In this document: piece after piece, positions 1,737 through 29,271 of the stretch
Layout: each line of letters opens with the position of its first letter
Position numbering within the stretch: the first letter of the stretch is position 1
Assembly: GCF_020745735.1 (NCBI RefSeq)
Contig: NC_083426.1
Span: 17,918,001-17,982,000 of the forward strand
DNA length: 64,000 nt
Direction: 5' to 3'
Source: Hemiscyllium ocellatum
Lineage: Eukaryota
Translations under genes and position numbers: made by a program
The notes under the pieces: generated by a model
Databases searched by the model: none
The model's input: the letters and a program-made list of their open reading frames with translations, nothing else
What the model was told of the DNA's origin: nothing

Positions 1737-1761
1737 ATGGCCAAGATCCTTCTGTGGGCTG
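1737..1761 (+). CDS. Chitinase exon 1 (signal peptide MAKILLWA)
   Basis: Kozak-like AAGATGG, 25-nt coding exon, donor GTAAGG. Confidence 0.85.
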
Positions 1762-4700
1762 GTAAGGACAATACTTAGCTACTATACTTAAATATTTCTC
1801 AACTGTAATTTGTAAATAGAACTATATTTCAATACATTAAAAATTTATATCAAATTATGACTTTGATTAAAATTATTTAGAATGTTTTCACTTCAATAAA
1901 TGCTGCCATGCCCATTTTACGTTTTCCTTTTTATTTTAGTGGGATTTGTGCTGCTGTTAGAAGTGTACAGTGGTAAGCAGCAACAGATTTTAACCTTTTA
2001 TTGTCAATGATTGTTAAATTGACCACGACCTTATATGTTCCTATGATTAGCTTAACTTTTAAAAATCATAAACTGCAAAGTTCTGAGCATTGTTATCAAT
2101 GTGTTTTCAAGCTTAAATTCAAAGTGCAGGCAATTTGTTTTTCCTTAGAATGTTATTCTGCTTAGAAGCTGTTAGTGCTGTTGCCTCTGAGAAGTTGTTG
2201 AACAAAGGAGCACCCAAGTTTTAAATGTCATTACACATGACATACACTGACATTTGTAGTGGTATTTTGTATTACAAAAGATTATTTAATAAGTAATATC
2301 AATACAGTCTGACAAGATCAGTTGGACAGTAAATTCTTTTAATATTTGTTTTTGATTTCTTAGCAAACTGTATATGTATGGAAAGGCAAGGCGATCAACA
2401 CACATTACAATGCTGGAAATAAATATATCATAACATAACCTCACTAACATCATAATATTATTTCATTTTTCAATATTGGGAATAAAGTCACAATGATAGA
2501 AAATTAGATTGGTGGAATATACGTACTTGCATTCTCATACTATTCAAGCATATAAGTTATGCTATCTCTAAGATCACAGTTGTTTTGCTAATGTAATTAT
2601 TCCATCTATGCCATACTGACTTAAAGATTATTAATATCACCAATGAACAATACATTAAAATGCTGTTGTGGTTCTGTCCACCAAGCTGGGAATTTGTGTT
2701 GCAGATGTTTCGTCCCCTGTCTAGGTGACATCCTCAGTGCTTGGGAGTCTCCTGTGAAGCGCTTCTGTGATGTTTCCTCCGGCATTTATGGTGATTTGAA
2801 TCTACCGTTTCCGGTTGTCAATTCCAGCTGTCCGTTGCAGTGGTCGGTATATTGGGTCCAGATTGACGTGTTTATTGATTGAATCTGTGGATGAGGGCCA
2901 TGCCTCTAGGAATTCCCTGGCTGTTCTCTGTTTGGCTTGTCCTATAACAGTAGTGTTGTCCCAGTCGAATTCATGTTGCTTGTCATCTGCGTGTGTGACA
3001 ACCGGAAGTGGCAGATACAAACCACTATAAATGCCGGAGGAAGCATCACAGAAGCGCTTCACAGGAGGCTCCCGAGCACTGAGGATGTCACCGAGACAGG
3101 GGACAAAACGTCTGCAACACAAATCCCCAGCTCGGCGAACAGAACCACAACAACGAGCACCCAAGCTACAAATCTTCTCACAAACTTTGAACATTAAAAT
3201 GTATCATTTTAGGATGACCTGTTAATCTAACACTAGTTGTTTGCCATGGCATTTTCTGTTTAAAATCAGAGATGTCCAAAGATATATGTTTGGGTCAAAC
3301 AGAAACTCCTTGCCTACACTGTTTTAAAACAGGGCTGTTAATTGCATCCCCCATCACTGCAGCTAACAGGGAATCTACATTGGTAATTGTGGCTCAGTTA
3401 AGGATTCATGTATCAATACATCCTGACACCACCATGCAGTACCAAGGGAGTGCTACATTATCAGAGGTGACATCTTTTGGATGAGACATTCACTTGAGGC
3501 CCGCTCTGTCTTTTCAAGTGGATATTGCTGGTTTTATGATCCTAGAGGAACCTTGTGATTACGTCATGGAGATGCACCTCAATGGACATAAACAGCACAA
3601 TGTGGGTGGAATCAGATAACAAGATAGAAACTGATGCAGAGAAGCAAGTGGAGTGATCAATTAGCATAAGACACTAGGCGTTTATGGGACAGTATTCCAA
3701 TAGTGAAATTAGAGCTTGGTACATTTCTGATTACTGTTTATTGTCATTTTTAGCCTTAATATATAATAAACAGTGTTATAAAGAGGCCTAAGGCTAAAGA
3801 TAAGTCTTGACCTTGTCATCACCTCAATCTGTCTGTCCTGAACCCAAACCATGTGGTAATAAAATCACACCAAATAAGAGACAAAAAAGATCCCAAGATT
3901 TGAAGCAGTCCAAGAAGTTATTCACAGTCTCCAGGCCAACTTACCTTTTAACAACCATCACAAAAGAAGCTGGTCCTTGCACCTTCTCCCATGTCCTTAT
4001 ACCAAATGTACACACCAGACCTTGTCATCACATCGGCTGCCACCACAAACAATATTGTCAGCCATCAATTAGTAGCTATTGATTCTCCCAGATTGACCTT
4101 TATCAGTTCCTTTGTCAAGCCAACTGTTTTATTCTCTCTCTGGGCTCCATCTCCACCTATCGCTTATTCTTCATTCATTTCCCCCATCCCATTTTCAGCA
4201 TATATAGCAACTTTTCCTCACTAAAATCAGCTCTGAAGGAGGATTACTGGACCCTTTCTGTCCAGCAATTTCTGTTTTTGTTTCTAATCATTGTATGTTG
4301 TGCTTTGCTTTGAAAATTAATGGCCATGTTTCTGACATAATAACAGTGACTACACTTTAAAAGTACTTCATTGGCTGTAAGGTGCTTTGGAATGTTTTGT
4401 GCTCATGAAAGGTGCCATATAAATTCAAGTCATTCTATATAGACATGACATAAAGCTCTTTTTTCAGCTTTAAAGGTGTCATTTTCACTTCAAGTGTTTC
4501 TACTTCCAAGTTATCTTTTTGAAATGTTAATTCTAATTGTAGAACCAAGCAACTAATATTATTTTCTAACACAGCTTCAGGCAAGGACTATAAACTGGTT
4601 TGTTACTACACAAACTGGGCCCATAAAAGAGGAGACTGTAAGTTCTTACCAGAAGACATTAACCCCAGGTTATGTACCCATCTCATTTTTGCTTTTGCTG

Positions 4701-7700
4701 TTATTGGCAATAACCATCAAATCGTTGCCCAGGAAAGTGAAGATGAAGATCTATACATCTCATTTAACAATCTTAAAAAGAGGTAAGTTTATTTTGTTTC
4801 AAATATCTCTGAAGTGCTTTTCTAAATATAATTTTGTTTCTATCATAAAGGTTCTTCTCAAAATATTATCAGAGTAATGAAATCACATTCTTCAAAATGG
4901 GAAATCAGTTTTGGAAAACCATACATGTAAATACCACCAGTTTAAAATTAAATTTGCTTGAGATTTATTGCACTGTACAGAAATGGATCTAAAATAAAAG
5001 GAAGAAATTACTCCATAGAAAACTAATTATAACATCCATTGTGATAATCCAGCTATGGGAAAGTGAAGACTACAGATGCTGGAGATTAGAGTCAAAAAGT
5101 GTGGTGCTGGAAAAGCACAGCTGATCAGGCAACATCCGAGAAGCAGAAGATTCGACGTTTGAGCCTAAGCTCTTTATCAGGAATGTGGGGGAGGTCCAAG
5201 GGGGCTGAGAGATAAATGGGAGGGGGTTGGGGCGAGGGGGAAGATAGCTGGGAATGCCACCGTGGGAAGTGTAAAACCTGCACCCACACCTCCCCATTCA
5301 GCTCCATCCATGGCCCCAAAGGACCCTTCCACATGTAGCAGAGATTTTCCTACACACGTGTCATCTACTGTGTCCGTTGCTCCCATTATGGAGTCCTCTA
5401 CATTGGGGAGACAGAATGCCAACTTGAGAAACGTTTCAGAGAACATCTCTGAAACATACATACTCAACAACCCTCACTGCCCTGTGGCCAAACACATCAA
5501 TTCCCCCTTCCACTCTGTAAGGACATTCAAATCCTTTTCCTCATCTCCCCTCCCCCAACCTTATCCGAGATCCAACCCCCCAAATCAGCACCGCCCTCTT
5601 GGCTGTCCTACCTGTCCATCTTCCTTCCCATCTAGTCGCTCCACCTTCCACTCTGAACTATCACCTTCTCTCCCACCTCCATCTACCTATCGCATTCTCA
5701 GCTATCTTCCCCCTAAGCTCCACCCCCTCCCATTTATCTCTCCCTTGGGCCTCTCCCACATTCCTGATGAAGAGCACATGCTCAAAATGTCAATTCTCCT
5801 GCTCCTCGGATGCTGCTTGACCGGCTGCTTTTCCTGCACCACACACTTTTTGACTCGAATAATCCAACTATGCACTAATTTCAACTCACACAGAAATAAA
5901 TTACAATATATTTCCACATCTCAAACACTACTCAATTAAAGCATGGTCTTTATCCAAACTAAATGTTGTATTATACATTATAATTTTAATCTCTCAGCTT
6001 CATTGTATTGGTGTGCTGCTAATTTAGAAAAAGTTGTAATTATTGCTCTCAATCAGATCTTTCTTTGAGCCTGATTTGTTTTTGTTTAAATAAATTCAAC
6101 ACAAAATTCTAGAAATATCCTGCAGATCTAGCAGCATTTGGAGACAGAGAAACAGAGAGAAAAATTCACTGAGTATTTTATTAAGTGAGATCCAAAGTGT
6201 CTGATCCACCATGGCTCATCGTGACCTTTCTCACACAACCTTCTCGCTTCACCTCATTAAGTAGACAACAGGGCTTTTGGGCAGCCATGTGGTGGGACAG
6301 ACAGAAGCACTCATCACTTGCTGGGATCTTCTTGCATTCTTGCTGCCAGAACTGTATTTAATGTCCAGCCAAACACTACTCAGTTGTTACAAGATTATAA
6401 CTGGAGTGGGAGTGGTCTTTAATGATGTTGGCTGACTCTCTGTGTCGACGAGAAGTGTAGACAGAGTCAAATGGATGTAAGGTTGGTTTGTGTGATGATT
6501 TGGGCTGTGTCCACAACTTTCTGTAGTTTCATTTGGTCCTGGGCAGAGCAATTAACATACCAAGCTGTGATGCATCAGATAGAATACTTTCTATGGTGTA
6601 TAAGTAAAAGTCAGTGAGGATCTTACTTTTTGCTGTTGAACAGTGATGAAACAAATGAACAGTCCTTTCAGACATGAACTATGAATGATCCTTGAACTAT
6701 GACATTGAGTCTGCAGCCAAGGCATTATACTTTCGAGTAGACAACACTGATGCTAAAATCAATTGGTACAGGTTGTGTTAGTGCCTGGCCCATACATATT
6801 ATTACACTTACTCACAACCATCGAGTGTGGATACATAAGCAATAATAATTCACACATCTTCCAAGGGAAATTCTAGATTTCAGATTTTTCAGGGACGTCA
6901 AGACGAGAAGATATAAAATGGACCTGTTGGAAATGTTTGCCTTGCTCTATCTTTGTAGTTCATCAGTCTGAGGTGTCAAAAAGGTGTCATATTTAGAGCC
7001 TATTGTCTCGTAGTAGTCTGTCTGGCCCAAGGATCTTGACAGCAGAATTCTCCAGTATGAGGAAGCAGTGGCAGCTCCCAGGATATCTGTCACAGATCTC
7101 CAAGATTTAGCAATGATGGTCATATGTATTTTAAACATCAATGTACTGAAAGCTTCATCATTTGAGGAACTAAAAAAGTCAGAGGCAGCTGTTATCAAAG
7201 CAACATTGCTGCAACTGACAGTGCCTGCATCTCAGGGAAGTCAGTGATAGTGGAAACTCTCACTGTCCAGCCACCTTCACTCTTCTCATCTTGAATGGCT
7301 CTTGAAGAGCTATGCACTGGAAAATATTACAATAGTTACATTTGGTTGCATTTATAGATCGAGAATGGGGAGATTCCTGGCTGCACCTCGAAATGAACTA
7401 CTTGCTTTAATATTCAGGGCAGATTTGACCTTGACAGTGGCCAGAATGGGATTATCATTTAGTCCTCTAAGCTCAAGTTCTGCTCCAGCAGCCGATCCAG
7501 GCCAATAATAAGAGCACAGGATAGCATTGTCATCATAGTCAATTCAAGATCAGAAAGTGTCCAGCTATGGCAGTCTTCATGTCAGATACTTGAGCAGATG
7601 CTGCCAAAATGAGAACAAATTTTGCTGAAAGGATTCCTGTTGTTCTCACATCCATCACAATGAAGCCTCGTGTTATGCCAATAAACAGTGTGGCATGGAA

Positions 7701-10700
7701 TCTTCCCAAGGATGGTATTGCCATGCCTCGTTAAGGAACTCTGATGTATGCCAACTTATTCAAAAGTGCAACCAACATTTTCATGCTACATTGCAAGAAT
7801 AATTTCTGCCAGTAAGCTAACAAGATGTTCCCATCTCCCTAATCCCCCAACAAGAAGGCAATATTCCACATTTTTGCACACAGACAGCTTACTGTGCCAG
7901 TTCTGAAGGGAATAAAGAGTCAAACACATTACTGCGGGACTCTGGAGTCACATATAGACCAGACCAGGTCAGAATGGCAGATTTTCCTTCCTGAAGGTTT
8001 TATGAAAGTGATGGGTTTTTAAATAATGATGGTAGTTTAATAGTCAGCATTATTGAAAGTAACTTTTAATTTCAGATTTTGCTTAGTGAATTGAATTTAA
8101 ATTCTATCAACTGCCATGGTGGTACTTGAGCCCAGTAATCTCAATCGTCACAGCATTAGGAATCAAAAGATTCAGACTAATGTGTGCAATTCTGGTCTCC
8201 CTCCTATCGGGAGGATGCTGTGAAAATTGAAAGGGTTCAGAAAAGATTTACAAGGACGTTGCCAGGGTTGGAGGATTTGAGCTGTAGGGAGAGGCTGAAC
8301 AGGCTGGGGCTGTTTTCCCTGGAGCGTCAGAGGCTGAAGGGTGACCTTATATACATTTATAAAATCATGAGAGGCATGGATAGGGTAAAAAGACAAGGTT
8401 TTTTTTCCCTGGGGTGGAGGATTCCAGAACTAGAGAACAAAGGTTTAAGATGAAAGGGGAGAATCTTAAAATGGACCTAATGGGCAACTTTTTCACACCG
8501 AGGGTCGTGCACATATGGAGTGAGCTGTCAGAGGAAGTGGTGGAGGCTGGTGCAATTATAACATTTAAAAGGCATCTAGATGGGTACATGAATAGGAAGG
8601 TTTTAAACGGATATGGGACAAGTGTTGGTAAATGGGACTAGATTAGGTTAGGATATCTGGTCGACATGGACAAGTTAGACAGAAGGATCTGTTTCAGTGC
8701 TGTACGTCTCGATGTCTCTATGACTAGTGTAGTGACATTACGATTACACCATTCTGTCAACTAAAACTCTTCAGTTAAAATAATCAATCAAACATGGCAG
8801 ACAATCACTGAGAATGAAATAAAATAAAATAAGGTAATAGTGGACTGAGTGTAGCATGGATTTTGCAGCTGCTCCTGAGTTTCAGACTTATTTTTAGATT
8901 TACTTACAGATTCCTTATATTTGTTACATTTCAGTAGTATAAAATTTTTATTTTGATTTATTTTTAGTTCTTTTATACTCAAAATCAACATTTAGATAAG
9001 TACAAGAAAGAAATGCTTGGACAGATACGGGCCAAGTACAGGCAGGTAGGACTAGTTTAGCTTGAGATTATAGTCAACATGGACCAAAGGGTCCGTTTCT
9101 TTTATCCTATTTCTAGAAAGAATACTGAATTACATAATGGGCTTTATATTCTTTTAAAATTAATTATCATCGCTTCTGATTTTCACAGGAACCCAAACTT
9201 GAAAACACTCTTATCTGTCGGAGGCTGGAATTTTGGAACTGAAAAGTAGGTTTTTTTCTCAGCAGCAATTTTCTACCATTATACAAATGTTATTTCTAAT
9301 CATGATTTGGAGATGCCGGTGTTGGACTGGGGTGTACAAAGTTAAAAATCACACAACACCAGGTTATAGTCCAACAGGTTTAATTGGAAACACACTAGTT
9401 AGTGTGTTTCCACTTAAACCTGTGGGACTATAACCTGGTGTTGTGTGATTTTTAACTATGTTATTTCTACTGTGTTAATGAAATGAGAAATACAGAAATG
9501 TGAGAAACTTCATACCAGAAGAACTGGATAACAGTCCATGTCTACTGGTGATTTTAAAAATATTTAATGCTTTTCTTTGACCTGTTAAAGTGTATTAGCA
9601 GCAATACAGTTAAGAAAAACATTCTTTAGCCAATGGAATCAGGATGTTGTACCGATACAGTTCACGAGTGTTTATCTTAATACATTACTTTAGAGTTCTC
9701 TGAAATTTAAAAGAATGAGAGATGTTGTTTAGCAGTGGACAAAATTTTTTTAGAAAGCTTGACAAGTTAGAAACTGAGAGAATATTTTTCCAGCTGAAGA
9801 GTCTAGAATCGCATAAGATGTTGGTGAGGCCACAACTGTGTATTGGGTGCAGTTCTGCTCACCACATTACAGGAAAGATGGAATTGCTCTGGAGAGAGGG
9901 CAGAGAAGATTTACTAGAATGTTGCCTGGGCTGGAAAATTGTGGCTATGAAGAGAGTTTGGAGAGGTTGGAGTCATTTTCCTTTGAACAAGGAAGGCTGA
10001 GGGGTGACATGATGGAAGTAAACAAAATTGGGAGGCGTAGAGATACAGTAGACATGAGGAACCTGTTTCCTTTGGCATGGAGTTCGAAAAGAAAGGTCAT
10101 AGACTCAAGCTAAATGGCAGGATTAGAGGAGTGTGAGGAAAACCTTTTACACAGAGGATGGTAGGTATCTGGAATTTGTGACCTGTTGGTGGTAGAGGCA
10201 GCAATTCTTTTTAAAAAGACCTGGATCTGCATTTTAAGTTCTGGAAGCTGTAGGGTCATGGTCCATGTGGAGGAAGATGGGATTGGAAAGGGCAGTTAGG
10301 TATCTTTGGGTCAGCCTGGACAAGATAGACTGAATGCCCCCCTTCTGGGATGGATCAATTTCATAGTTCTAATTGAAGACCGTCATCTCAGAACAGTCAA
10401 CAATTTTAAAAAGATTTGAAGAGAAATTTCTTCGCTGCATTTTGTGGATCTTCTGAATTCTCTACTTCAGAGAGCTGTGGACATTCTAATGAGATTACTC
10501 ACAATTGAGATTGATAGAACTTTTGGTACAAAGCAAATTTAGGGATATTGAGAAATACAGCACGAAAGTTAGTAGATGAAGATGTTCAGCATGATCTTAT
10601 CAAAGTGCAATGCAGATCCAATGGAATGTTGTCAACACTTAATTCTGTTTCTTATGCCTTTATATCTTTCAGGTTCACTGCCATGGCTTCCAGCAAAGAT

Positions 10701-13700
10701 ACCCGTCTAATATTCATTAAATCTGTTATAGAATTCCTACGACAAAAAGATTTTGATGGTTTAGATCTACATTGGGAGTACCCAGCATTTAATAGAAGCC
10801 CATACCTGGACAAACAGCGCTTTACTTTGTTGGTTCAGGTGAGTTACATTATACCTTAAATCCATGAGTTATCAGGGGATTCAATCTGTGCAATATGTTT
10901 TAAAAATTAAATACAGATCATACGTATTATATAACAAAAAGACCTATCATCAACTTCTTAATGAGAAAAATCACTAATAATAAATGTCCATGTTTAACAG
11001 TTACATTTGAATTGAATTGAATGATTATTGTCACTTGTATGTAACAAATAAATAGTGAAAAGTGTAAAATGTAGCCATGCTCTGGCACCATTTTGAGTTA
11101 CAGAAGATAACTAGAATATAACTAAAGTCAGAATTCTTTCACCCTATTTGTGCTCTGCTCGAAATTGGAGGGGTGGGGGGGGGGGGGGGGGGGGGGGTGG
11201 CGTTTTCCAGAACAGGTTCCAGTCCATCAACACACTCTTGTATCACAGTCCATTCCAGAAGCCCTGCTCCACTGTTATCGTCACCGTTACTGCGTTCCAG
11301 ATTTACCACATCGGGCCTACCACGCCGCTGCCAATGCAACCACCAGTCCCATCGATCTGCCAAAAGTACCGAATTGGGCCTTCGCATCTCCGCAGCTGAA
11401 GCCCAATATCCTGATTCTGATGCAGATCACTGATGCCACCTTCGCCGCCAACTGCAAGGGCTTCTCTGCTTTCACTGCCATATTGAAAGCAGTGCCACTG
11501 ACACTGTCTTGAGTCCTGCACTGGTTGACCCATCAACATTAATGTCACTACACTCTGGCAGTATCTGTCACTGCTGGGCCCACACTCGTTGCCTCTCACC
11601 AAGCAGACAACTCTTACTGCCATTGCTGTACATGCTCAGAATATTGGGCCCAGCTTTGCTCTTCTCAAGGCACCAAAAAGGCTTTTAAAGCAGAAACGAG
11701 AAGGAAAAATGAAAGAGAGCAAAAGTAAAAAGAGAAAATTAAAAAAGAAATCAGACGGAAGTGGATGAGACTTGGGCTAGGAGCTTAGATGCAACACTGC
11801 CAGTCTGCTGCCATCTTGATTTGGCAACAAGAATTCAACTCTTAACTCACAAAAATAGATGATTTATAGCATGTCAGAGGTTAAGATGAAAGAATTCTAC
11901 CAAGGGATTTGAACCATCTCAAACCTGCTTTTATTAGAAATGATACAAGGATACAGCTTTGTTTTTAAATGCAAAGTACATACCTTCATTCTAATAGATT
12001 TTTCAAAGTAGCTGAGTCTCCTAGACCTGGGGAATTCAGCAACTTTAATAAAGCAAGATGTGCAAGGTAAGTGCCATAATAGTTTCTGCTTAGGGGCGGA
12101 GCGGGCAAGTTTTCTCTCGACATGACATTCTAGCTAATTAAACAGCCATTGCCTAGGATTTCTCTGATTCCACATGTTCCCCATCACACACACACACCTG
12201 TGATTATAAAACTCCTCCTGACCAGAATTGTCAGATTGTACCACTGCATTTACCCACTTCAGTCAACCCACCTGAAATGTGTCAACAGGCCAGAACCCCA
12301 CAAAAAATTTAAATCAACCCTGTAACCAAATTCTGCAAGACATTGAGGAAACCCATTTGAGTTCTCCAAAGTTGCAACATTTATGCCCCTGCCACAGAAT
12401 AAACTTTGCTCCTGAGGCATAAATCCAGGCCAATGTGATTTATGCAAGTATGTTGCAGATTGGACATAGAGTCAAGCTGCCAGAGGAATCAGTTGGAGGC
12501 TAGTACAACAACAACAATTAAAAGGCATCTGGATGGGTATATAGACAGGACGGGAATAGAGGGATATGGGCCCAATGCTGGCAAATGGGACTAGATCGGT
12601 TTAGGATATCTGATTGGCATGGACAATTGGACAGAAGGGTCTGTTTCTGTGCTGTATAACTCTATGATAGGAAAGGGTCATGTGATTTTTTTTTGAAAAA
12701 TAGCGTTATCTTTGCCTATGGTGTTGATAAGCCCTTTAAAATGCATTATTCAAAATTTGTAAATGTGTTTTATGTTAAAGCACATTTTCATTTCAGATAT
12801 TGCACTCACATCCAAATTCACTTGACACCTGGACATTCCGGTTCTACCCCAAGGTTTGACTTTATATTTAAAGGCCCATAATGATTCATCAGTTGTGTAT
12901 TTTCCTGCAATTGCATACCATAGCTACGTTTTAATTAGATTAGATTAGACTTACAGTGTGGAAACAGGCCCTTCGGCCCAACAAGTCCACACCGACCCGC
13001 CGAAGCGCAACCCACCCATTCCCCTACATTTACCCCTTACCTAACACTACGGGCAATTTAGCATGGCCAATTCACCTGACCCGCACATCTTTGGACTGTG
13101 GGAGGAAACCGGAGCACCCGGAGGAAACCCACGCAGACATGGGGAGAACGTGCAAACTCCACACAGTCTGTCGCCTGAGTCGGGAATTGAACCCGGGTCT
13201 CAGGCGCTGTGAGGCAGCAGTGCTAGCCACCGTGCCGCCCAAGAAAGTGATTTTATAGTGACTGAGAATTTCAAACCATAGTCCATTCTCTGGGTATTTT
13301 AAATAGTTAACCTACCTTCTCCAGCAAAGCATTTGCTACAGCCTTCCCAATACCCAACCATGAAACAGTATAATTGCCAGTGCAGTCATACACTTTCCCC
13401 CCAAATAAAGGAATCCCTGGAACCTGACCAATCTCATTTCAAATTACCTCACTCCCTTCCCCCAGGACTCTTCTTCTCCCTCACTCTACCCATTGCCTTC
13501 TACAAGTTTACCCTTTTTTCTCTTTCTATCCCTTTTATCTCATTTCATTTTGGGACATTTATTCTCTTGTCCTCTTCGCTTCCCCTTTTATTTCACCAAT
13601 CACCAAAAGCCATTGGACAAGTGGGAACAAAATCAAAAAGGCTAATAAAGTATCAACCTTTATACCAAAAGTTTTAAATACAAGTGATGCATCCCTTCTC

Positions 13701-16700
13701 CAAAGTCTGGGTCACACAGATTGTTGGGACACAATCTAAATTGGCCAGAATCATACCAGGACGTAACAGATTAATTATAAAATCAGATTATAGAAACATT
13801 TCTTGCATTCCCTGGAGTTTAGATGATTGGAGGATGCCGTAATTTCAAAAGTCAGTAATGAAAATATGAAAGAATGCTCTCCTGAGATGAGGCACTTTTC
13901 CCCATCAGGGAATCAACATTGAAAACCCTTGTCCTCATCCTGCATCTAAGGAGAAACATCTGTTTGAAAGTTGCCTGAAAGATCAGCAGCCCTGTCTTCT
14001 ACTGCCTCAGGATGACGTATTTCAGTGAACAGGTGTTGAAATATGCTGAAAATGCAATACATTTGAAAATATAATATCCAATGTTCCATTGTGATAATCC
14101 TTTCATCAAATTTATTATATGTTAACATATAGGAAACTTTTGAAGAGTTCAAGAAGGAATCTGGTGAAAATAACAAACCGAGATTGCTGCTTTCAGCTGC
14201 AGTGGCATCTGGCATAAGAAACATTCAAGCAGGCTATGAAATAGAAAAGATTTCAGAGTATGTACAAGCTACTTATGTGACGTACATTTTCCAACTGATG
14301 CAGTCTGCATTTCATCGTACTCTAAATTTAGTAACTACATTCCTGACAATAACAACCAAGACATTGAATAAGTGCAATATTTCTACTGTACTGAATAGAA
14401 ACTTTCAAAAGTCAGATACATGATAAAACTTCTGAACCAAAGGGTTAGGTGTTGTAGATTAAATATTTTGGCACTGGGCACTAAACAGCAGAATAAATAG
14501 GGTTAGGGAACAACTGGATTCAGTTTTAACGAAGGATTATATCGAAATTTATAACCAGAAGCCAGGAGTATAGGTTTGACTTTGACAAACAACTAAACTT
14601 GGTGAGTGTACTGAAACAAAAACGCGACGTAGAACTTTATAGGAGGTGGAGGCTGTGGGTTGTGGAGAGTCGTGTGGCAAAATCAGGCAAGTGTGGCCGG
14701 GGGCATCTTGTTGGGAGCACATCATCCTTTATGCTTTTCACAAGCTATGTTGAGAGATTCTTGCAAGGGAGTGGCAATTTGCCAACTGACAGTCAGTAAT
14801 GCTGGTTAAATGCCTTTTTAACAGCCCAACTTGCCTCATTAATATTCAAACTCCCATCTTACCAAACAAGCCTGACAAGGGGAAAACTCAATAGAAAATC
14901 AAAGTGGGTCCCTGGCTCTCTGCTGGCAGCAAGGGACCTTCATGTTGGACACTGGGCATCAACACTTCAAAGCATGCTCCAAGGGCATTGGCCACATGTA
15001 TGCCACGTCCACAGAAATTAGCATCCAACATGTGCCAGGCTTTAAGCACCCTCTTGGCACATCTCGGGTCCACTTACAGGACACTTTTACACGTCACAGC
15101 TGCACTGGCAACTGTGTTTATAATGCTGTAGCAAAGGCAATGTGTGTTCAGAAACACAAGCCCAGCTCATGGACAGGACTAGACTGCACCTTTGGGCCCT
15201 TTGCTTGCTCGGTGTCTACCGGATACTCAAAGCCTCGCTTTGCCTCTTTGCACTTTGCCCCCTCAGCCAGAGATACCAGGCTGACATTACTGTCACTTTG
15301 TCTTGCTGGTTGGCGCAGATACAAATTCAGTAAGCTGGCTTTAGTTGCCAGCAAGCCTCAGTCAAGTCTAGGGAGATAGCTTCCATTCAGCAACACCTGA
15401 CACCATAAGTCAAGATCACTCTCTGATACCAGTTCAGGCTTTGCCTGGATATTCAGTCAGGATCCTGTTCTCAGGCAGCCCACCAACTTCTCTTGACTCT
15501 TTCTGCCCAGTTGGAGTTGCCTTCGTCCTGGCATGAGAAAGAGAGAGAGAGAGCGAAAGAGAGAGAGGGAGAAAAAGAGAGGAATTACATGAGATGTAAG
15601 TAAATGGCACAGCTGTTCCTATTGGTGCAGGTGAGAAAGTGTCCCAAGTTGGTGAGTAGGAAGTGTAGAGGATATGTAGTGTTCATGGTTTTCAGGAGGT
15701 GACAGAGGCTAAGGCAGGATATTACAAACAATACTGAGAGTGATACAGCGTGAGATTTGGTGGGAAGTGAGTACAGTAGCAGAGATAGTGTGAATATTAG
15801 GTATCTGAGAGATGGCGGTATTTACCTCAGCAGAGAGGAAAAGGACATTGGCCCCTTCCCTATATTATTGTGCATTTCTCCAGGCAGCTGATACTGCACT
15901 TACCCAGGTGTCAATCACTCTTGGCACAGTCTGGTGTTGGAGCGGCGACTGCTGATCTTGAGGGAAGAGAAGTCCTGCATTGGTACTATCCAACCAACAG
16001 GACCTCCACGAACCTACACACAAACCAGTAGTTGATTTCCCTGTCTGCTATGTCTGGGGCAAATATGAGGATTCATGCAGGGCAGCTCAACAGTGCTGGT
16101 CCATGTACACCATGAGCCCAGGCCCAAGGCTTGCTGATCTTTTGGTGGTTTTTGGCTAAACAGCAAGTTTTTACAGGAACAATGTGTAGTAAAATGGGGC
16201 AGAAATCATCTGAGAGACTCCATTTGAGAGGGATGTTTTTGGCAATTAATGAGACATTGGAAAGACAAGGCAAGAAAATTCACTGAGCCTTATGGGGACA
16301 AACCCTCCCAAAAACCCAATGCAACCCAAACTTTGTCAAAAAACAAAAGAAATATCCAGCCCGTAGTGAGAAAGAAACTCAGCAAGTGTGCCAGCATCCA
16401 TGGAGAAAAAAAAAACAAAGTTAACGGAGTCCATTTTGACTCTTCTTCAAAAATTGTTGATGAGTAACTGGCCTTTTCCTGTTCCTTACAATTCTCATTT
16501 GATAATGTATAAGCTATGAAACATAATAAATAAATTACAGATTTAGAGACAGCAGGAAGATAATCATTGCTATTCTTCATCACTGGTTGGGTCAATGTAT
16601 GCAGCACACATGTCCTTGAGTACCAGCCCCAACATCTTATTTTTGTTTTATATAGGCCCCTAGATTTTATCGGTGTGATGACATATGAATTCCACGGACC

Positions 16701-19700
16701 ATGGGATGTTACAACTGGACCAAATAGCCCCCTGTACAGAAGTTCTACTGATTATTATGACATTAAATACTTTAACGTTGTATGTATAAAAACTAAGAGA
16801 ATCATTTCTACATTTTAATTTTTCTAACGTTCATTTGAATCATTAATGCAAATTTAAAATGTTACTTCAAATAATATGTTTTCCTTGTAGGAATTTGCTA
16901 CAAACTACTGGAAAGAAAATGGTGCCCCTGCAGAAAAACTACTGGTTGGATTTCCAACTTATGGCCGTACCTTTACACTCTGTTCAGCTGATAACAAACC
17001 TGGTGCTGCAGCATGTGGTCCTGCATCACCTGGAAATTGTACTAAAGCAGCTGGTATTTGGGCATACTATGAGGTACGGTTTAACATTTTATATTTAAAA
17101 ACTTATGTCAACATCTTGCATCATAACATTCACACGAAGAAACTTTAGCACTCGTCATATAAATCATGAAAATTAAAGCTACCGCAACTCTGATTACAAC
17201 AGAAGTCTGTTGTATTACCATGTCCTGACTTTGCAACAGCCCGCAGATTTAAAAAAAAGCATCTTTAATTACCAGAATCATGCCATCTACCACAGAGATA
17301 TCCTTACCATGATCATCATGAAATATTAACATTGTTGTAAAAAGGAACTTGCTGTCACTTTGTTTCATTTTGCACTACTCAGGATAGAATTGCAAGAATA
17401 TCAAACTTCAAAGGGAACAACAATAAATACTGGAATTTCCAGCTTAAATAGAAAATCTCTATCAAGATTTGCACCACCAAACAATTATTTAACTACCAAA
17501 TAATGAAGCCTTAACAGAAGTGTTATACATTTACCATAATTGCATTCAATGTTTTCGTCAATTAGAGTAAGAAGATATACTATAATCCAGAGGAAGTGCC
17601 TGGGTTAAAATAAGTTAAACAATGAGTAGATAAAATCATATTTCTCCCTCAATCTATAATCAATCTATTCATCAGTTGCACAATGACTTTCATTTGTAAG
17701 CAAGTTGTTTAAATGAAATCCGTTGAGTACATAAGCTAAAGATTTGCCCCTTTATCCTCTATTCTTTTCCTCCTACCTGCCCTTTGCATTCTCTGAATTT
17801 CATCCATTGCAGGGTATAAGCAGATATCAGTTCAGTGTTGCTCTTTTACCTTCATATGGAAACAACGGAACGTTATCAGTAATTGAGTCTAACCCATCAT
17901 CTGCAAACCAACTTCCCAGTTCGGTGAACATAACCATAACTATAAATGGAAGCATCCTTGTGAAACGGATTAATGACACTAAATTTGTAATCAGTTACTA
18001 AACTTTGCTATTTGTAATCTAATTCATATGATTTGTCTGGTGGTGTTTTGGGGTCTTAGTTATCCATTATATTTATTAATGACTTAGGCAATGGGTTAGA
18101 AGCCATTTTTGTTTTCAAATTTACTAATGATGGAAAGATTGTAATCAATATAGACAGAAGAAAATTTTGATGCAGTAAGTGAAGAGGCAGGACCATGGAA
18201 AATGGATTTTACCATAAGCAAATGTGAGCTTCAGACCTCAAAATGGTAGAAGAGGGTGGTGTCAAAAAGTTGAAAGTTTAGTAACTGTGGAAGACAAAGA
18301 GAGTTTCAAATCCAGAGATTATCTCCTTTAACAAATCATTGTAACATCTTGAACACCTTGATTAGATCACTTCCCAATCTTCCATTTTCAACAGAATATA
18401 ATTTGTGCTTTGCAGCTTCAGGATGGCACAGAAGAGTATTAGCTCCCATAACCTACTTGTGCCTCAGTTGTAAACTGTACACATTTTTGTTAACAGATAT
18501 GTGACTTCTTGAAAGGCGCCAAAGAAGAGTGGATGGAGGAGCAGGAGGTTCCATATGCATATAAAGATGATGAGTGGGTTACTTATGATAATTTGAAGAG
18601 TTTTGAGAAAAAAGTATGTATTTTACAGTCATTTTCTGCTGCATTTAAGCAATTGTACATAATTAATCCACCTGTGTACACAGTCAGTTTAACAATTGGC
18701 TTAGATATAGTTTAATTAAACAGCTAGCAGGAAAGTAGAGAGAGTTCATGAGAAAGCATTAGCAGGTACAATTAAGGAAAACCCAAAGGATTTTTAAAAA
18801 ATATATGTAAAGAGCAAGAGAATAACGAGGGAAAATGTAGGACCCATTTGGAACCATTAGAGGTAATCTGTGTGGGACCCAGAATACATGGACACAATTC
18901 TCAATGAATACTTTGCACTGCTCTTACAATAGAAAAGGACAACATAGACATCATGTCGGAAGACTGTGAAATGTTAGAAGAAATTAGCATAAAGGAAAAT
19001 TAGCAATGTTAGCAGCTTTAAAAGTGGATAAATCTGTAGGCTCAGCATCCCAGTCTATTGAGGGAGACACCCTGGCCACAAGTGAGGTTTCAGAGGAGCT
19101 AAGGACTACAAAGTTGTCAATTCATTTTCAAAAAGGAAAGCATAGATCAAGAAATTACAAGCCAGTCAGTTCAACCTCAATGGTGAGAAGGTAATAGCAC
19201 AAATTCCAAGGTATAGAATATATTTACACTTGGGCATACACAGATTAATCAGGGATAGTCAGCTTGGATTTAAGCAATTTCCACATGTGACAAATTTGAG
19301 AAATTAAACAGGAATATTGATGAGGGTGATGCATTTGATGTGATCTACATGGACTTTAGCAAGACTTCTGATATGGTCCAAAAAGAATTGAAACAAACTG
19401 TGGATGCTGTAAATCAGAAACAAAACCAGAAATGGCTGGAAAAGCTCCGCAGGTCTGGCAGCATCTGTGAAGAGAAATCAGAGTTAATGTTTTGAATGCC
19501 AATTCTGAGGAAAGGTCAGCGGAACTTAAATGTTAACTTTCCACACGATCCCTCAGGGCAGACTGGTGAAGAAAGAAAAAGCCCATCAAATCCAAGGCAA
19601 AATGACAATGTTGGATCCAAACGTGGCTGAGAAGCAGCAAGTAAAGGGCGATAATAGAGAGATATTTCTGTGACTGCAAGTTTGTTTTCAGTGGGAGTCC

Positions 19701-22700
19701 ACAAGACTCGCTGCTGGAACTCCTGCTGATTGCAGTGTACATGAATGATTTGGACTTAATTGCAGGGAGTCTGATGAAGGAGTTTGTGAATTACACAAAA
19801 TTAAACTCATGACCACAACAATAAGTGGAATTCAACCTGAAAAAGTAAGAGGTCTAACAAGGCAAGGAATTACATTATGAAAGGCAGATCCCCGGAAAGG
19901 ACTGAAAATCAGGTGGACATATGTGTGTGTCCATTGATCCCGGGAGGTATCAAGACAGGTAGTTAAAAAGGTAGATGAGATACTTGCCTTTATTAGGCAA
20001 GGCATATAATATGAGAGTAAAGAGGATATGCTGGAACTGTACAAATGTTGGTTAAGTCACAGATAAAGTGCTGATGCAGTTTAGTTTATGGGAAGGACTA
20101 AAGAGGGTCCAGAATGCTACCTGAACTATAGGGAAAGATTAGACTGTCTGGGATTGTTTTCCTTGGAACAATAAAGATTAAGAGGCTACCTCAAGGAGGT
20201 GTATAAGATTGTGAAGGGCATCGATCGGGTGGATTGGAAAGCATGTTTTCATTAGTAGAGGCGTCAATAACTTTAAGGTAAGAAGTAGAAGGCTAATAGG
20301 ACAGTTGACAATTATTTTACATTCAGAGGGAGGAGGAAGTCTAGAACTCTTCATCTGAAAGTGTGTTTGAATCAAAAAGAACTCTGGTAACATTGAAGTA
20401 AAAATTAGGATATTCACTTGTGTTGCCATAATCTCAGCTGAAAATGGGACTACTTGTTGAGTGACACATGTATGATGGGTTGAATGGCCTCCTCTGTACT
20501 GTAAACATCTGTGTATCAACAAACTTATAACTCTAAGTTCATACCCATGTTGCTTCCAAAGGCATTGATGACTAGATTTCCTTTTTAATTGTGTTTAATA
20601 ACTTTTGTTTTCTGTAATGTTGCTCTGAATGCTTAGTAATACTAGCTAGTAATATAGATACTAGATAGTATTATGGATAATAAAGAAAACAACAAGTTGC
20701 TGTTTATTTGGAAGCATCCAGTCCCTCAGTTTCCCATCACTTCCTAAAGGCTTATCCGTAGCACTCAGTATCTGAGCATCAGCATTGTGTGAGCCAAGAG
20801 AGCAAGTACTCACAATATAGACTGGCAGATGTTTGTGACAGAATCAAGGCAGATAGAATTAAGATTTAGAACAATCATGATCTAACAATAGCAAAATAAG
20901 TTAGGAAGGACACACATGCTGATGCTTTCTGCAAAGAGTCACTAAAACAATAAAAATTTAATTTCTCCGTGTGCTTGCTTAGTGTTCTCCAGTGTGCATC
21001 ACCTGTTATGTGATTGGATTCTGGAACCATTCTGACCAATGAGATCCACGAGAGGCCGTGCACTTGATATCATGAAAACATCTAATTTTGTAGCTGAAAT
21101 AAAGACTAACCCTTGAACTGCATATGATGGTATTACACAGTAATAGTGGTCCACAAGAAGAGTCCATTCTGACTAAATAGAATGCTTTAAATTCTTTTTA
21201 CATAGGTGGAATGGCTAAAAAACAATAGCTTTGGTGGTGCAATGGTTTGGACAATCGACATGGATGATTCCAAAGGTACTTTCTGTAAGCAAGGAAAATC
21301 ACCCCTCATTAGTAAGCTGAAGATTATGCTTTCTTCAAAATCTAAACCTAAAGATGATTCATCAGGTAATTTATTATTTCATGCAACTTTTCTGAACCAG
21401 ATAAATATTTGTTAAGCTGAAACGCAACTCATTTCGATGCACTTGTTTGTCTATTCTAAAATCCATTACCATAACTATTTCTATAACCTCAACTATATGG
21501 ACAGATACAGGCATGTTTTTAAAATGCTACTCATTCAATAAAATTAAATATATTCATGCACTAATATCATATTAAAAAATTAATGGCAAAATAATACCAT
21601 AAGTTTTCACACTGTGGTAACCATGAATACTGATGTGGCACATTAGCGATTCCCTTGTGGAGATCCAAGCACAATGTTGCTCAGTACATAACAATGATCT
21701 CTAAATTGAGAAAATTTTCCAATCTTCCCATCACATTTAATGATGTTACTATTGCCGAATCTCCCCCACCAACTATCAACATTTGGGAGGCCACTCTCAA
21801 CTAGGAATAGAACTAGACCAGTCATATAAACAGTGTGTGTAAGGACATTTTCTCCTGACCGGGTCTGAAAACTCAGGAGGCAGGCAGGATTCTGGCAAGT
21901 GGAAGACTTTTATTCAAGCAGAAACCAGTTAATGCAGGGAGAGGGCCAAAGGATCTTCCCCTGAGACTGGCCTCAGAAGGGAGATCCATGACACACTCGA
22001 ATTTGTAGAGTAAAAAGCAGTGTTTTATACATTTATACTCCATAACATGGGTTACAGTCCTTCCCCCATAATCCATATACCCAATCCTGTAAAACATCTA
22101 ATCAATGCTGGGCATCCCTAAGGACAGTCCCACGAGCCATTATCTCATGGCATTAATGGACACTACAATCGCTAGATCTTTATAGGCATCCCATTCATTT
22201 GCATTCCAAAGTACTCTACTGGGTCTGTTTCAGACTGGCTTATCTCTAAGGACAGCTTGAATTTTGTTATTCACTGTATTTCATCTAATTACTCTTCTTC
22301 AATTTTGAACTATCCTAACTATATGGAAAAATACAAAAAAGTCAGAGTTTTAACTAATTACTATAAGATTTGAAATATTGGCTTGTAATATGAAGTTTGT
22401 TATAAACTGTAAAGTAGACATATATATCACACAGCTATTTGTACCCTTAGTACTTTGTGATTAATGGGCTTTGAACAATCTATATTTTTCAGGTGTCTGA
22501 GAAGGGCATTTCTGAAAGCTAATTAACTTTCACATATTGGCATAAGTATTTTGATTATATGTACCTAGTTTTGTTGAAAACTATCCCTGTAATTCTCTGC
22601 AGAATCTTTAACTAGAACCTATTGCTTAATATTGTGAGTAATTAACTTCAAAGAAACAACTATTTACGACAAAATTACTAACTGCTGTTCTGGTAGCTGT

Positions 22701-24913: not shown

Positions 24914-27412
24914 AATAGTTTGAAGAATTACAATGTTAAAATGTTCATACCGGGACCATTAATACAAAACTGAATGACTATTTTATTATCTTGGAATGCA
25001 TGTTGCCAACACCAAGATGGCCATCTGCGCATGCAGTGGTAGAAGGTGATGCTGGTTCATCCCTTCAAATTTTCTGCCTGTTTGCCACCCTCTTCACAAG
25101 AACACATTCTGGATGTGGCCCCATCATCTACTGTAACCCCCCCCACATCCCCCACCGCATCACTCACTGCTAGTGTCTGCATCCCTCAATGCTCGACTTC
25201 CCATTTTGCTCAGGGTGTGAGACAGAGTGAGACATAGTGAGACATGGAGTTGAGTGCACCGCTGGGCCAATGTCAATCAGCAGCAGTGTTGTAGGTTTAA
25301 TAAATCCACAGGCTGAAAATTCAATTCTGGCATACTGTAAGATCTGTTGCTTTCACTGAGCCAGACTCAGAGGTTTGATTGCAAAGTGATGCTTCCTCAT
25401 ATATGTGAATGCAATTGGCAATAGGCATAACCTTTATATTTGTGCTGCAGCATCATATGGTTTAAGAATTTAGGATTTCTGAATATCGCCTAATTCCACT
25501 TTGATCAGCAATAAAGCACATTATGACGTCCCTAGAGACCAGCATTGCCCCCAACTAAATTTAACAATCCCATATCTTAAACAATTCATCCACTTTTTCT
25601 CTCCACCTTCACAATGCTCGACTTGAGTTGTGCCAAGCCCACCTGGTTCCTGGCCTCTTACAGGTTTACTTCAAAATGGATGAGAGCTGAATACTGCCCT
25701 TGATATCAAGACAACATCTTACCAATTTGACTTTAAAGGAGCCCTGACAAAACTGGAGCAGTTGAGAATCACATGGCAAAACTCTTCACAGTGTCATACC
25801 AAGCACAAAAAAAGGATGAATGTGGTTGTTGACAGCCAATCATCTCAGGCATAGGGCATCACGGCAGCAATCTTCAGGGTCAAGAAATAACCTTGGTTCA
25901 TTCATCATTGACTTTCTCTCTATCACAAGATTTGAAGTGTGGATGTTCACTAATGACTGGAAGGAGTTCAGCACCATATGTGACTTCACAAATACCAAAG
26001 CGGTCTATTCAATGTACAAATTAATTTGACGTCAATTAGATCATTCTGTGTTCAAACCTGTTCCACCACTTTATAAGACTGTGGTCAATCTGATTACTCC
26101 ATATTACCAACTGTTGCAGATAACCTTTCATCCTCTTGCTTATCAAGAATCCATTATGAATTTCATTGCATCATTAACAACAAGACCGAAACAACATTCA
26201 GGCTTGGGCTAATAAATGGCAAATAGCATTCAGACCAGTTAAATGTAGTTAATAAAAGTCCCCAACAATAGAACATGTAAGGATCTACCCTTGATATCCA
26301 GTGCCATTACCATCAACAATTTAGAGGGTACTGTGGACCATATAATTAACTATGTCATTGACATAATTACTATAGTTACAAGAGTAGATCATAGACGATG
26401 AATTTGGCTGTGACACACTACCTGGCTGGGAAAGTCTGCTCATCAACCACAAGGCAGAAATCAGGCATGCGATGGAATGGTCTTCACCATAAGATTTAGC
26501 AGCAAAAGTAGACCATTTGGCCTAATTCTGCTTTGCCACTTGATCATGGCTGTTATGTTTCTCAACCCCATTCTCTACATTCTCCCCACCATGTTTCATC
26601 CCCTTGCTAATCAAGGACCTATCTGTCTTAAATACACTAAAATGTACACTGTAGCAATGAGTTCCATAGATTCACAACCCTTTGAAGTAATTCCTCCATG
26701 TTACAGTTCTAAAGGAATGTCCATTCAGTCCTCGGCTATACCATCATCTCCTAGTCTCTCCTATCAATGGAAACATGATCTTCAATTCCATTCTATTCTG
26801 ACCTTTCAGTTTTCTGTAAGCTTCGACGAGATGCCCCCCACCCTTCTAAACTCAATCAAGTACAGCCCCAGAATGCTCAACCGGTTCTTATATGACAAGC
26901 TCTTCATTCCCAGAATTATTTTTGAAAATCTCCTCTGAACCCCTTCCAATGTCAACACATCCTTCTTGAGATATAGTGTCCAAAATTACTCATAACATTC
27001 CTAATACAGCCTTAGTAGTATATCTTTGCTCTTGTATTCTCGCTCTCTTGAAATGAATGCTAAGGTTGTGTTTAGTCCAACAGGTTTATTTAGGAAGCAC
27101 TAGAGCTTTTGGAGAGCTGCTCCTTCACCAGGTGGTTGTGGAGTATAAGATCTAAGATGCAGAATTTATAGCAAAAGTTTACAGTGTGATGCAACTGAAA
27201 TGATGCATTGAGAAAGACCTTGACTGCATGTTAGTCTCTCATCTTTTAGAATGACCATGTTAGCTTCAGTTCTTTCATATGTAAATCCCAGAACTTTTTT
27301 TTAAAAAGTTACATTCTCAAGTGAACTTTAATACTGGGTGCCATATCAACTCGGATAATGCACTGAACGTGTAAGGTTAAAGTCCGTCTGTCTGTATCCC
27401 TAAGTTCAGATT

Positions 27413-27707
27413 GATTAGATTAGACTTACCGTGTGGAAACAGGCCCTTCAGCCCAACAAGTCCACACCGACCCGCCGAAGCGCAACCCACCCATACCCCT
27501 AACCTAACACTACGGGCAATTTAGCATGGCCAATTCGCCTGACCCGCACATCTTTGGACTGTGGGAGGAAACCGGAGCGCCCGGAGGAAACCCACGCAGA
27601 CACGGGGAGAACGTGCAAACTCCACACAGTCGCCTGAGTCAGGAATTGAACCCGGGTCTCAGGCGCTGTGAGGCAGCAGTGCTCACCACTGTGCCACCGT
27701 GCTGCCC
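27413..27707 (-). mobile_element. tRNA-derived SINE (HE1-like) nested in the left arm of the Penelope palindrome
   Basis: Absent from the corresponding right arm (about 28985-29000). Confidence 0.85.
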
Positions 27708-27986
27708 ATTCTATTACTAAAAAAATAAATTTATAGAATCTTACATTAATTCATGCAGTTTTTGAGCAAAATAAAATATAATTCTGCAAATACAAATTCA
27801 CCCCACGACCTTATGTGTGTGCACGCATATGGGTGTGTATGGGGTGGGGGTGTCTGTGAGCGTATGTGTATGCACGTGAGTATAAAGGGGTATAGGTCTG
27901 TCAGAGGATGCATGTGTGTGTGTGAGCTTATGAGAGCTTGTGTATGAAGGGGGGTGGGGGGTTGCGTGAGTGTATGGGTCTATAGG

Positions 27987-27988
<2 letters not shown>

Positions 27989-28060
<72 letters not shown>

Positions 28061-28068
28061 TGTGTGTG
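27989..28068. repeat. (TG)n(AG)n compound microsatellite
   Basis: Directly visible. Confidence 0.95.
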
Positions 28069-29271
28069 TAATGCAGTGGGGTAACCTGTAGTATGGCATG
28101 AACACAATGTCCCGGTTGGAGCTATCCCCATGGGTACCGAACTTAGCTAACAACTTCCTCTCAGCCACTTTGCATTGTTGCCTGTCCCAAAGTTTGCCTT
28201 GGAGGATGGTCACCCAAAGATCCATGGCTGAATGTCCTGGACTGCCGAAGCGTTCCCCAAGTGGGAGGAAACACTCCTGGCTGAGCATTGTTCTGTGGTG
28301 TCCATTCATCCGTTGCCGTAGCCTCTACTCGGTCTCGCCAATGTACCATGCCTCAGGGTATCCTTGCCTGCAGCGTGGACGTGGCAGGTACTCATGTGAC
28401 TTGGCCTTATACGCTGCAGGCAAGGATGCCCTGAGGCGCGGTACATTGCCGAGACTGAGCACAGGCTACGACAACGGATGAATGGACACCACACAACAAT
28501 CACGAACCAGGAACATTCCATCCCAGTCAGGGAACACTTCATCGGTCCGGGACATTCGGCCTCTGATCTTCAGGTGACCATCCTCCACAGGCAAACTTTG
28601 AGACAGGCAATAACACAAAGTGGCTAAGCAGAAGTTGTTGGTCAAGTTCGGTACCCCTGGGGATGGCCTCAACTAGGACCTTGGGTTCACGTCACACTAC
28701 AGGTGATCCCACTGCACTACACACTCACACTCCTATAGACCAATACACTGACGCAGACTCTCTCGCACATACACACACCCCACATCGTCTCAGACATATA
28801 CCCCCTTTACAGTCACATACATATACACTCTCTCAGACACTCACACACCCCTCCCCCCAACACACATCCACATGCGCGCATGCATAAAAGTTCGTGGGGT
28901 GAATTTGTACTTGCAGATTTACATTTTATTTTGCTCAATAACTGCATGAATTTATGAAATATTCTGTAAATCCCATTTTTTAGTAATAGAATCAGTCTGA
29001 ACATTGGGACACAGATAGGCGGACTTTAACCTTACACCTGCAATGCACTATCTGAGCTGACATGGCACCTATTGTTAAAGTTCACTTGAGAATGTAACTT
29101 TAAAAAAAGTTCTTTCTTATGTAAATTCCAGAACTGAAACCAACATGGTCATTCTAAAAGATGAGAGACTTAACAAACAATCCAGGTCTTTTTCAATAAA
29201 TCATTTCAGTTGCATCACACTGTAAACTTTTGCTAGAACTTCTCTTGTCTTACGATCTTATACTCCACAAC

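Follow-up and report, generated by a model that had tools for sequence, protein, structure and literature searches.

Can a chitinase do without the aspartate that is regarded as essential to its chemistry? Enzymes of glycoside hydrolase family 18 (GH18) serve as the standard example of substrate-assisted catalysis, and D2, the third Asp of their DxxDxDxE motif, is considered indispensable. A stretch of 64,000 nucleotides from the genome of the epaulette shark, Hemiscyllium ocellatum (NC_083426.1, positions 17,918,001 to 17,982,000 of the forward strand; this whole stretch is called the window here) contains a chitinase-family gene in which this Asp is a His. The codons at 10749–10784 are GAT TTT GAT GGT TTA GAT CTA CAT TGG GAG TAC CCA and give, in frame, DGLDLHWE. 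They lie in exon 5, which is bordered by TTTCAG upstream and GTGAGT downstream, and whose translation (55 amino acids) matches the chains of human and mouse acidic mammalian chitinase (AMCase) and of human CHIT1 from end to end, with E-values of 3e-14 to 1e-13. In these alignments the His falls on the second Asp of the DFDWE/DLDWE of AMCase and CHIT1 (FDGLDFDWEYP). The canonical motif is thus broken at its third Asp only, and the first two Asp and the catalytic Glu are retained. A reading of the locus made without database searches (the sequence-only reading) had pointed out this His and the retained Glu, and both are borne out by the translation of the window and by the alignment to AMCase and CHIT1. 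Comparison between species indicates that the His variant is real, old and selected, and it is probably function-altering.

The gene is found on the + strand at 1737–24870. It has 11 exons and ten introns, all of them GT-AG, and was assembled by combining stretches free of stop codons with splice sites and with peptides that match orthologues. The coding sequence of 1758 nt encodes 585 amino acids and has no internal stop, in agreement with the intact 11-exon frame of the sequence-only reading, and three orthologous loci (in Rhinoraja, Pristis and Heptranchias) have the same 11 exons, with rebuilt coding sequences that translate exactly to the database proteins. The encoded protein starts with a signal peptide (called by eye from its hydrophobic N-terminus), followed by the GH18 domain, a Ser/Thr-rich linker and three CBM14 modules, all of which are encoded in the last exon. 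Pfam PF00704 (GH18) matches an orthologue that is 96% identical to the window protein (P0002) with an E-value of 9.6e-98, and Pfam CBM_14 matches three stretches within window positions 24313–24867 (E 2.8e-24). An AlphaFold2 model of the GH18 domain of the same orthologue, built from a 48-row alignment, has a predicted local distance difference test score (pLDDT) of 93.2 and a template modelling (TM) score of 0.96 to AMCase catalytic domains; its sole soft spot is the loop directly after the catalytic Glu, where the pLDDT is 76. Membership of the GH18 fold is therefore supported by the profile, by the exon 5 matches and by the model. The secretion signal and the C-terminal CBM14 stretches are of the CHIA/CHIT1 type, and the 11 exons, the three CBM14 modules in one terminal exon and the monophyly described below identify a chondrichthyan GH18-(CBM14)3 paralogue. 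A second chitinase gene was not found by tblastn within the window. The deposited NCBI model for this gene, XP_060700995.1 (P0153, 389 amino acids), omits the 33-nt signal-peptide exon and stops before the exon with the three CBM14 modules. The window protein is identical to it wherever the model extends, and the intact frame of the window is collinear with a 585-amino-acid Chiloscyllium protein. The public model looks incomplete, or it represents a minor isoform.

Is the His real? CAT is one base from GAT. A mistake in assembly or sequencing, or an allele private to the sequenced animal, was one way in which the sequence-only reading expected that it could be refuted; it proposed to look for the residue in other elasmobranchs. 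The exon was used in a profile-free scan of 1.84 billion representatives. Together with two subsequent searches of a 90%-cluster collection, this recovered full-length orthologues in sharks (Chiloscyllium punctatum, C. plagiosum, Hemiscyllium ocellatum, Rhincodon typus, Mustelus asterias, Scyliorhinus torazame, Heterodontus francisci, Heptranchias perlo and Pristiophorus japonicus), in batoids (Rhinoraja longicauda, Narcine bancroftii, Pristis pectinata and Hypanus sabinus), and in a single chimaera, Callorhinchus milii. In public records the elasmobranch proteins are named "acidic mammalian chitinase-like" or "hypothetical protein". DGLDLHWE is found in 13 of 13 elasmobranch species including that of the window (9 sharks and 4 batoids), which adds 12 further species, with assemblies of their own, to that of the window. 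The codon is CAT in the sharks Hemiscyllium and Heptranchias and CAC, two steps from GAT, in the batoids Rhinoraja and Pristis. In addition, contigs from three samples of another study (S1–S3) hold 100% of the sampled 31-mers of 10400–11100, and four samples of that study (S2, S3, S22, S23) hold 100% of the sampled 31-mers of the last exon. The number of species and the synonymous codon variation exclude an error or a private allele, to which we give a vanishingly small probability.

The same orthologues share a second change. Where canonical chitinases have M(T/S)YD(F/L)HG, with a Tyr-Asp dyad that corresponds to Tyr212 and Asp213 of CHIT1 and AMCase, all 13 elasmobranch orthologues have Glu instead of the Asp and read MTYEFHG (MSYEFHG in Heptranchias). 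His141 goes together with this change of Asp213 to Glu and with a remodelled loop behind the catalytic Glu, a link that is absent from the sequence-only reading. The chimaera protein shares the three-CBM14 architecture, yet its motifs are NGLDLDWEYP and MTYDFHG, with Asp at both sites.

A tree of GH18 proteins, which the sequence-only reading had also proposed, shows where the changes belong. It was calculated by maximum likelihood from 49 rows under LG+C20 PMSF, with few named mammalian lectins included. The three-CBM14 proteins group together in one chondrichthyan-only clade (support 100/100), separate from the CHIA/CHIT1-like rows of tetrapods. The elasmobranch His/Glu proteins are in turn monophyletic within this clade (again 100/100), with Callorhinchus as their sister. 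The canonical shark chitinases (DGLDLDWE, YD) form a clade separate from the three-CBM14 proteins. A chondrichthyan-only clade does not fit descent from the tetrapod CHIA/CHIT1 duplications, the exact position of the lectins being outside the reach of this tree. Because all elasmobranchs have His and Glu and their chimaera sister has Asp and Asp, parsimony puts D138H and D213E on the elasmobranch stem, where each most likely arose once, together with R145N, G146R and others. By divergence dates, this stem spans the interval from roughly 420 to 270–300 million years ago. As one holocephalan was sampled, the pattern may instead reflect hidden paralogy, that is, an older duplication followed by reciprocal loss. 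The stem of the chondrichthyan clade is long, with branches of 0.55 and 0.23 substitutions per site. On this phylogeny the His variant originated independently of the mammalian chitolectins, and it is elasmobranch-wide, not chondrichthyan-wide. The separate origin is what the sequence-only reading had supposed; its description as a cartilaginous-fish protein stands for the elasmobranchs, with 13 of 13 species, but not for chondrichthyans in general, since the chimaera keeps the Asp.

Is the His also selected? Codons were compared in four species (Hemiscyllium, Rhinoraja, Pristis and Heptranchias) by the pairwise Nei-Gojobori method. The ratio of nonsynonymous to synonymous substitution rates (dN/dS) is 0.075–0.20 in the GH18 domain and 0.11–0.36 in the linker and CBM part. 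Like the codon for the His, the codon for Glu216 varies, being GAA in Hemiscyllium and GAG in Rhinoraja, Pristis and Heptranchias. There is thus synonymous drift in codons whose residues are fixed, and this speaks directly for selection on the His and the Glu themselves. Canonical DxxDxDxE paralogues share both species and contig with the His/Glu gene; P0448 of H. ocellatum is one example. When shark orders are compared, identity in the GH18 domain is 87–92% for the His/Glu paralogue and 74–82% for the canonical one in the same species pairs, with the caveat that the canonical copies may not be strict 1:1 orthologues. Both shark paralogues are ~67–71% identical to Callorhinchus, and the extra change is therefore concentrated on the stems. 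These comparisons indicate that strong purifying selection has maintained the His/Glu state ever since. A decaying copy or pseudogene, in which odd residues have accumulated by drift, would agree with the shortened NCBI model of 389 amino acids, but it is very unlikely given the intact frame of 585 amino acids, the ten GT-AG introns, the low dN/dS of the GH18 domain and a conservation above that of the canonical paralogue. As to expression, small runs of three related organisms, presumed to be RNA, gave shares of 0.09–0.19 for a stretch that is 24% exon and of 0.36–0.41 for the last exon; these exon-sized shares fit expression, without proving it, and also count against a decaying copy.

The two substitutions are part of a larger set. 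Alignment columns were screened for a conservation of 80% or more among 33 canonical vertebrate chitinases combined with a different, fixed residue in elasmobranchs. The screen yielded, in AMCase numbering, Y34K, D47N, D138H, R145N, G146R, A186S, D213E and F300I. Callorhinchus has Arg at the first of these positions and the canonical residue at each of the others. Four or five of the elasmobranch-fixed changes line the −1/+1 subsites, and they cluster at the active site (D138H, R145N, G146R, D213E and F300I). The columns of Asp138 and Asp213 have Asp in 33 of the 33 canonical rows; the elasmobranch paralogue has His in the former, and in the latter it has Glu next to a Tyr that is kept. Retained are D1 (Asp139), Glu143, Tyr215 (Tyr212 in CHIT1) and Met213 (Met210), as well as the Trp of GGW, the Trp of HGPW, the Tyr and Arg of PTYGR and the Trp of MVW. 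The net effect of Y34K, D47N, D138H and G146R, partly offset by R145N, is a less acidic site. R145N also creates an N-R-S sequon (10791–10799) five residues past the catalytic Glu, shared by 12 of the 13 elasmobranch orthologues (the exception, Mustelus, has K). If glycosylated, this sequon would place its glycan at the + subsites.

A shift in charge of this kind raises the possibility that the groove now serves a different ligand, perhaps an anionic or sulfated glycan, or else a protein partner as in the plant protein XAIP, with the CBM14 modules serving only as an anchor to chitin. The fixed changes Y34K, D47N, D138H and G146R do add basic and remove acidic groove residues, and there is a precedent in plant His-Glu GH18 proteins that became enzyme inhibitors. 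However, R145N takes away a basic residue, the chitin-stacking aromatics and the residues of the acetamido pocket are kept, and three CBM14 modules point to a chitin context; retargeting is in our view improbable.

How unusual is a GH18 domain with His and Glu as its catalytic pair? In a sample of ~620 GH18 domain instances, biased towards relatives of exon 5, the pair is Asp-Glu in 531 and His-Glu in 21. The His-Glu instances are the elasmobranch proteins and one each from a dragonfly (Ladona fulva), a stink bug (Halyomorpha halys) and a whelk (Babylonia areolata). The three invertebrate domains all carry Phe for Tyr212 (FD). The nearest relative of the Babylonia domain, in Nucella, has Asp together with FD, so the Babylonia His is apparently recent and arose on a dyad that was already altered. 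A YE dyad was found in none of the 531 canonical Asp-Glu instances sampled. His at D2 thus recurs in the sample, each time accompanied by an altered residue within the Tyr-Asp dyad or next to it, which suggests that it is tolerated only after the dyad has changed. Neither a YE dyad nor a comparably deep, sampled conservation is present in the invertebrate cases or in salamander proteins with the same His, and the deeply conserved combination of His and Glu216 is peculiar to elasmobranchs within the sample. Literature searches found no paper that uses DxxDxHxE and no description of the motif from a shark or elasmobranch. Narbonin was considered as a His-Glu precedent, but the papers support only a retained Glu132, salt-bridged to Arg87, and it is not relied on here.

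The salamander proteins, from Pleurodeles waltl (P0089) and Lissotriton helveticus (P0093), form a clade of their own (100/100, stem 0.73) with the motif DGIDLHFQYP, in which the catalytic Glu is lost, and one member also has YN in place of YD. They make up an independent lineage of chitinase-like proteins in amphibians, again with His at D2. Another D2 variant is seen in fish. The Esox lucius protein XP_034146378.1 (5937 amino acids) has at least 6 GH18 domains, each with DGLDLAWEYP, that is, Ala at D2 with the Glu retained, and short fish fragments have DGLNLAWEYP; a Glu-retaining D2 variant is therefore found in several fish-derived sequences.

What would the His do to the enzyme? In CHIT1, Asp138 rotates to Glu140 and takes the proton of the oxazolinium nitrogen (PMC12502790). 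Tyr212 and Asp213 clamp the −1 sugar through the acetamido oxygen and the 6-OH (PMC12502790; PMC11182645), with Asp213 of AMCase forming a hydrogen bond to the 6-OH of this sugar (PMC11182645), and a strongly negative site stabilises the cationic intermediate in CHIT1 (PMC12502790; PMC11182645). In the elasmobranch protein the residue that would accept the oxazolinium proton and steer the catalytic Glu is an imidazole (His141), and this, together with the less acidic site, would weaken substrate-assisted chemistry. Binding of chitin or chito-oligosaccharides would persist, as the sugar-binding groove with its aromatic platform, the catalytic Glu, D1, Tyr212, Met210 and Arg269 are all kept. An intact groove combined with three CBM14 modules would make a multivalent binder that is chitolectin- or pseudo-chitinase-like, and the canonical DxxDxDxE paralogues on the same chromosome would carry the bulk of chitin digestion. 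We lean, with modest confidence, towards such a multivalent chitin binder in which hydrolysis is strongly attenuated or altered. The sequence-only reading had likewise supposed a lowered or altered hydrolysis, with transglycosylation as a possible outcome. The reasons for assuming attenuation are the replacement of Asp138 by an imidazole, the loss of negative charge, and the plant proteins XAIP and XAIP-II, which have the same His and are without chitinolytic activity, although their sugar channel is obstructed as well (PMC2998507).

There are points that weigh against attenuation. The catalytic Glu, D1, Tyr212 and Met210 are invariant across elasmobranchs, whereas the dead mammalian chitolectins lost the Glu, so that the chemistry may persist. 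The change from Asp213 to Glu is a conservative one and suggests compensatory adjustment more than decay. The precedent of XAIP, finally, is confounded by the obstruction of its sugar channel. A possible, if doubtful, alternative is therefore a glycosidase that is still active with a re-engineered centre. Here, Asp139 would polarise His141, which would take the acetamido N-H proton and favour a neutral oxazoline, and the longer Glu216 would re-seat the −1 sugar, leading to a pH shift or a bias to transglycosylation, possibly on endogenous chitin. Such an enzyme would account for the retention of Glu143, D1, Tyr212, Met210, Trp361 and Arg269 in every species, for the joint fixation of D138H and D213E that were then frozen, and for a constraint above that of the canonical paralogue. 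It would also agree with quantum mechanics/molecular mechanics calculations for CHIT1, where favouring the oxazoline over the oxazolinium leads to transglycosylation (PMC12502790), and with the finding that chondrichthyans, elasmobranchs and holocephalans alike, make chitin of their own in their ampullae of Lorenzini (bioRxiv 10.1101/687301). This endogenous chitin is a conceivable non-dietary substrate for the His/Glu protein. On the other hand, His141 in its protonated imidazolium form would make the oxazolinium less stable, negative charge has been lost from the site overall, and the only tested natural His-Glu GH18 proteins lack chitinolytic activity. Mutants of D2 in bacterial and mammalian GH18 enzymes lose 2–4 orders of magnitude of activity, which also weighs against an active enzyme. 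We consider it rather unlikely that His141, Glu216 and Asp139 together make a working alternative constellation for substrate-assisted catalysis, in a pH-gated chitinase or transglycosylase that remodels the animal's own chitin (e.g. in the gel of the ampullae of Lorenzini or in gut matrices) and takes no part in prey digestion.

Whether it is an attenuated chitin binder, as we tend to think, or an enzyme with altered chemistry, the locus records a vertebrate lineage that swapped D2 for His, kept the catalytic Glu, changed the Asp that seats the −1 sugar along with it, and came under tighter constraint than its ordinary chitinase. The chimaera orthologue offers a natural Asp/Asp control with the same architecture for the roles of D2 and Asp213. 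With the elasmobranch proteins, vertebrates have arrived at "chitinase-like" proteins by a third route, separate from that of the mammalian lectins and in animals that make their own chitin. The coordinates of the gene and of the residues discussed are collected in Table 1.

Table 1. Exons and key codons of the chitinase-family gene in the window (positions count from the first nucleotide of the window).
Feature	Position	Strand	Remarks
Exon 1, coding part, ends in phase 1	1737..1761	+	Peptide match to orthologue N-termini (P0002/P0153); donor GTAAGG
Exon 2, 33 nt, hydrophobic core of the signal peptide	1940..1972	+	Absent from the NCBI 389-amino-acid model
Exon 3, start of GH18; Lys37 (AMCase Tyr34) and Asn49 (Asp47)	4575..4782	+	
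Exon 4, SxGG motif; equivalents of Trp99 and Asn100 retained	9189..9245	+	
Exon 5, catalytic motif followed by the AFNRSP loop	10673..10838	+	
CAT, His141, equivalent of Asp138 in human CHIT1/AMCase (D2 of DxxDxDxE)	10770..10772	+	
GAG, Glu143, retained catalytic acid (equivalent of Glu140); invariant in the 48-row alignment	10776..10778	+	
AAT AGA, Asn148-Arg149 in place of the conserved Arg145-Gly146; N-R-S sequon	10791..10796	+	
Exon 6	14133..14257	+	
Exon 7, motif III MTYEFHGPW	16656..16779	+	
GAA, Glu216, in place of Asp213 of CHIT1/AMCase (Asp of the Tyr-Asp dyad)	16687..16689	+	
Exon 8, PTYGRTF; GIWAYYE	16891..17073	+	
Exon 9	18497..18613	+	
Exon 10, end of GH18 and start of linker	21206..21365	+	
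Exon 11, Ser/Thr-rich linker, three CBM14, stop codon	24311..24870	+	Pfam CBM_14

The surroundings of the gene contain a few further features. A CPSF6/7-like neighbour (~42000–58513, − strand) is convergent to the chitinase gene, and the N-terminal RRM-like part of a Scyliorhinus torazame protein, GCB65327.1 (P0011), matches 58513–58376 (−) with 67% identity. Because the two genes are convergent, the S. torazame model, in which a CPSF-like part is fused to a chitinase, is probably an annotation artefact. Copies of an interspersed repeat with near-identical stop-free translations (HYGQFSM.NS...HIFGLWEET) are located in introns and flanks, at ~12940–13255 (+), 27380–27750 (+), 23800–24020 (−) and 2625–3200, and the stretch 13111–13171 lies inside one of these copies. 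An intronic poly-G run at ~11160–11190 translates to poly-Gly in three frames, and a long microsatellite of the (GT)n/(CA)n type with low-complexity flanks is found downstream of the gene at ~27950–28090.

Among known systems, the elasmobranch protein resembles CHIA and CHIT1, with which it has 57–58% identity in the GH18 domain; its predicted fold has a TM score of 0.96 (to 3FY1, 3FXY and 8FR9). The signal peptide is common to all of them, as are the catalytic Glu, D1, Tyr212 and Met210, the platform of Trp residues and a CBM14 at the C-terminus. CHIA and CHIT1 differ in having Asp138, Asp213, Arg145-Gly146 and one CBM14, where the shark protein has His, Glu, Asn-Arg and three CBM14 modules and falls in a separate clade. 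The mammalian chitolectins CHI3L1/YKL-40, CHI3L2/YKL-39, Ym1/Ym2 and OVGP1 are likewise vertebrate GH18 proteins in which DxxDxDxE is broken and the sugar groove preserved, and their fold is similar (TM 0.92–0.95). However, these lost the catalytic Glu (types AWL, SWI and FFL were observed) and arose within tetrapods, whereas the shark protein retains Glu143 and is of independent origin. Mammalian chitinase-like lectins are also not known to have a CBM14. Ym1 retains the Asp at D2 (DGLNLDWQ), and the list of lectins in which the sequence-only reading had this Asp replaced is thus slightly off.

The same His is found in the invertebrate His-Glu domains of Ladona fulva, Halyomorpha halys and Babylonia areolata, which differ by the change of Tyr212 to Phe from the Tyr-Glu of the sharks, and in the salamander His-Gln proteins, which unlike the shark protein have no catalytic Glu. 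The closest parallel in the residues themselves comes from plants. XAIP and XAIP-II of Scadoxus multiflorus, which belong to GH18C, have the same replacement of Asp by His with the Glu and the Tyr kept (His124/Glu126/Tyr182). These are plant class III proteins of ~273 amino acids without CBM14, with an obstructed channel, and they act as inhibitors of xylanase and alpha-amylase. They are not close relatives of the shark protein, so that acquisition of the His was convergent in the two.

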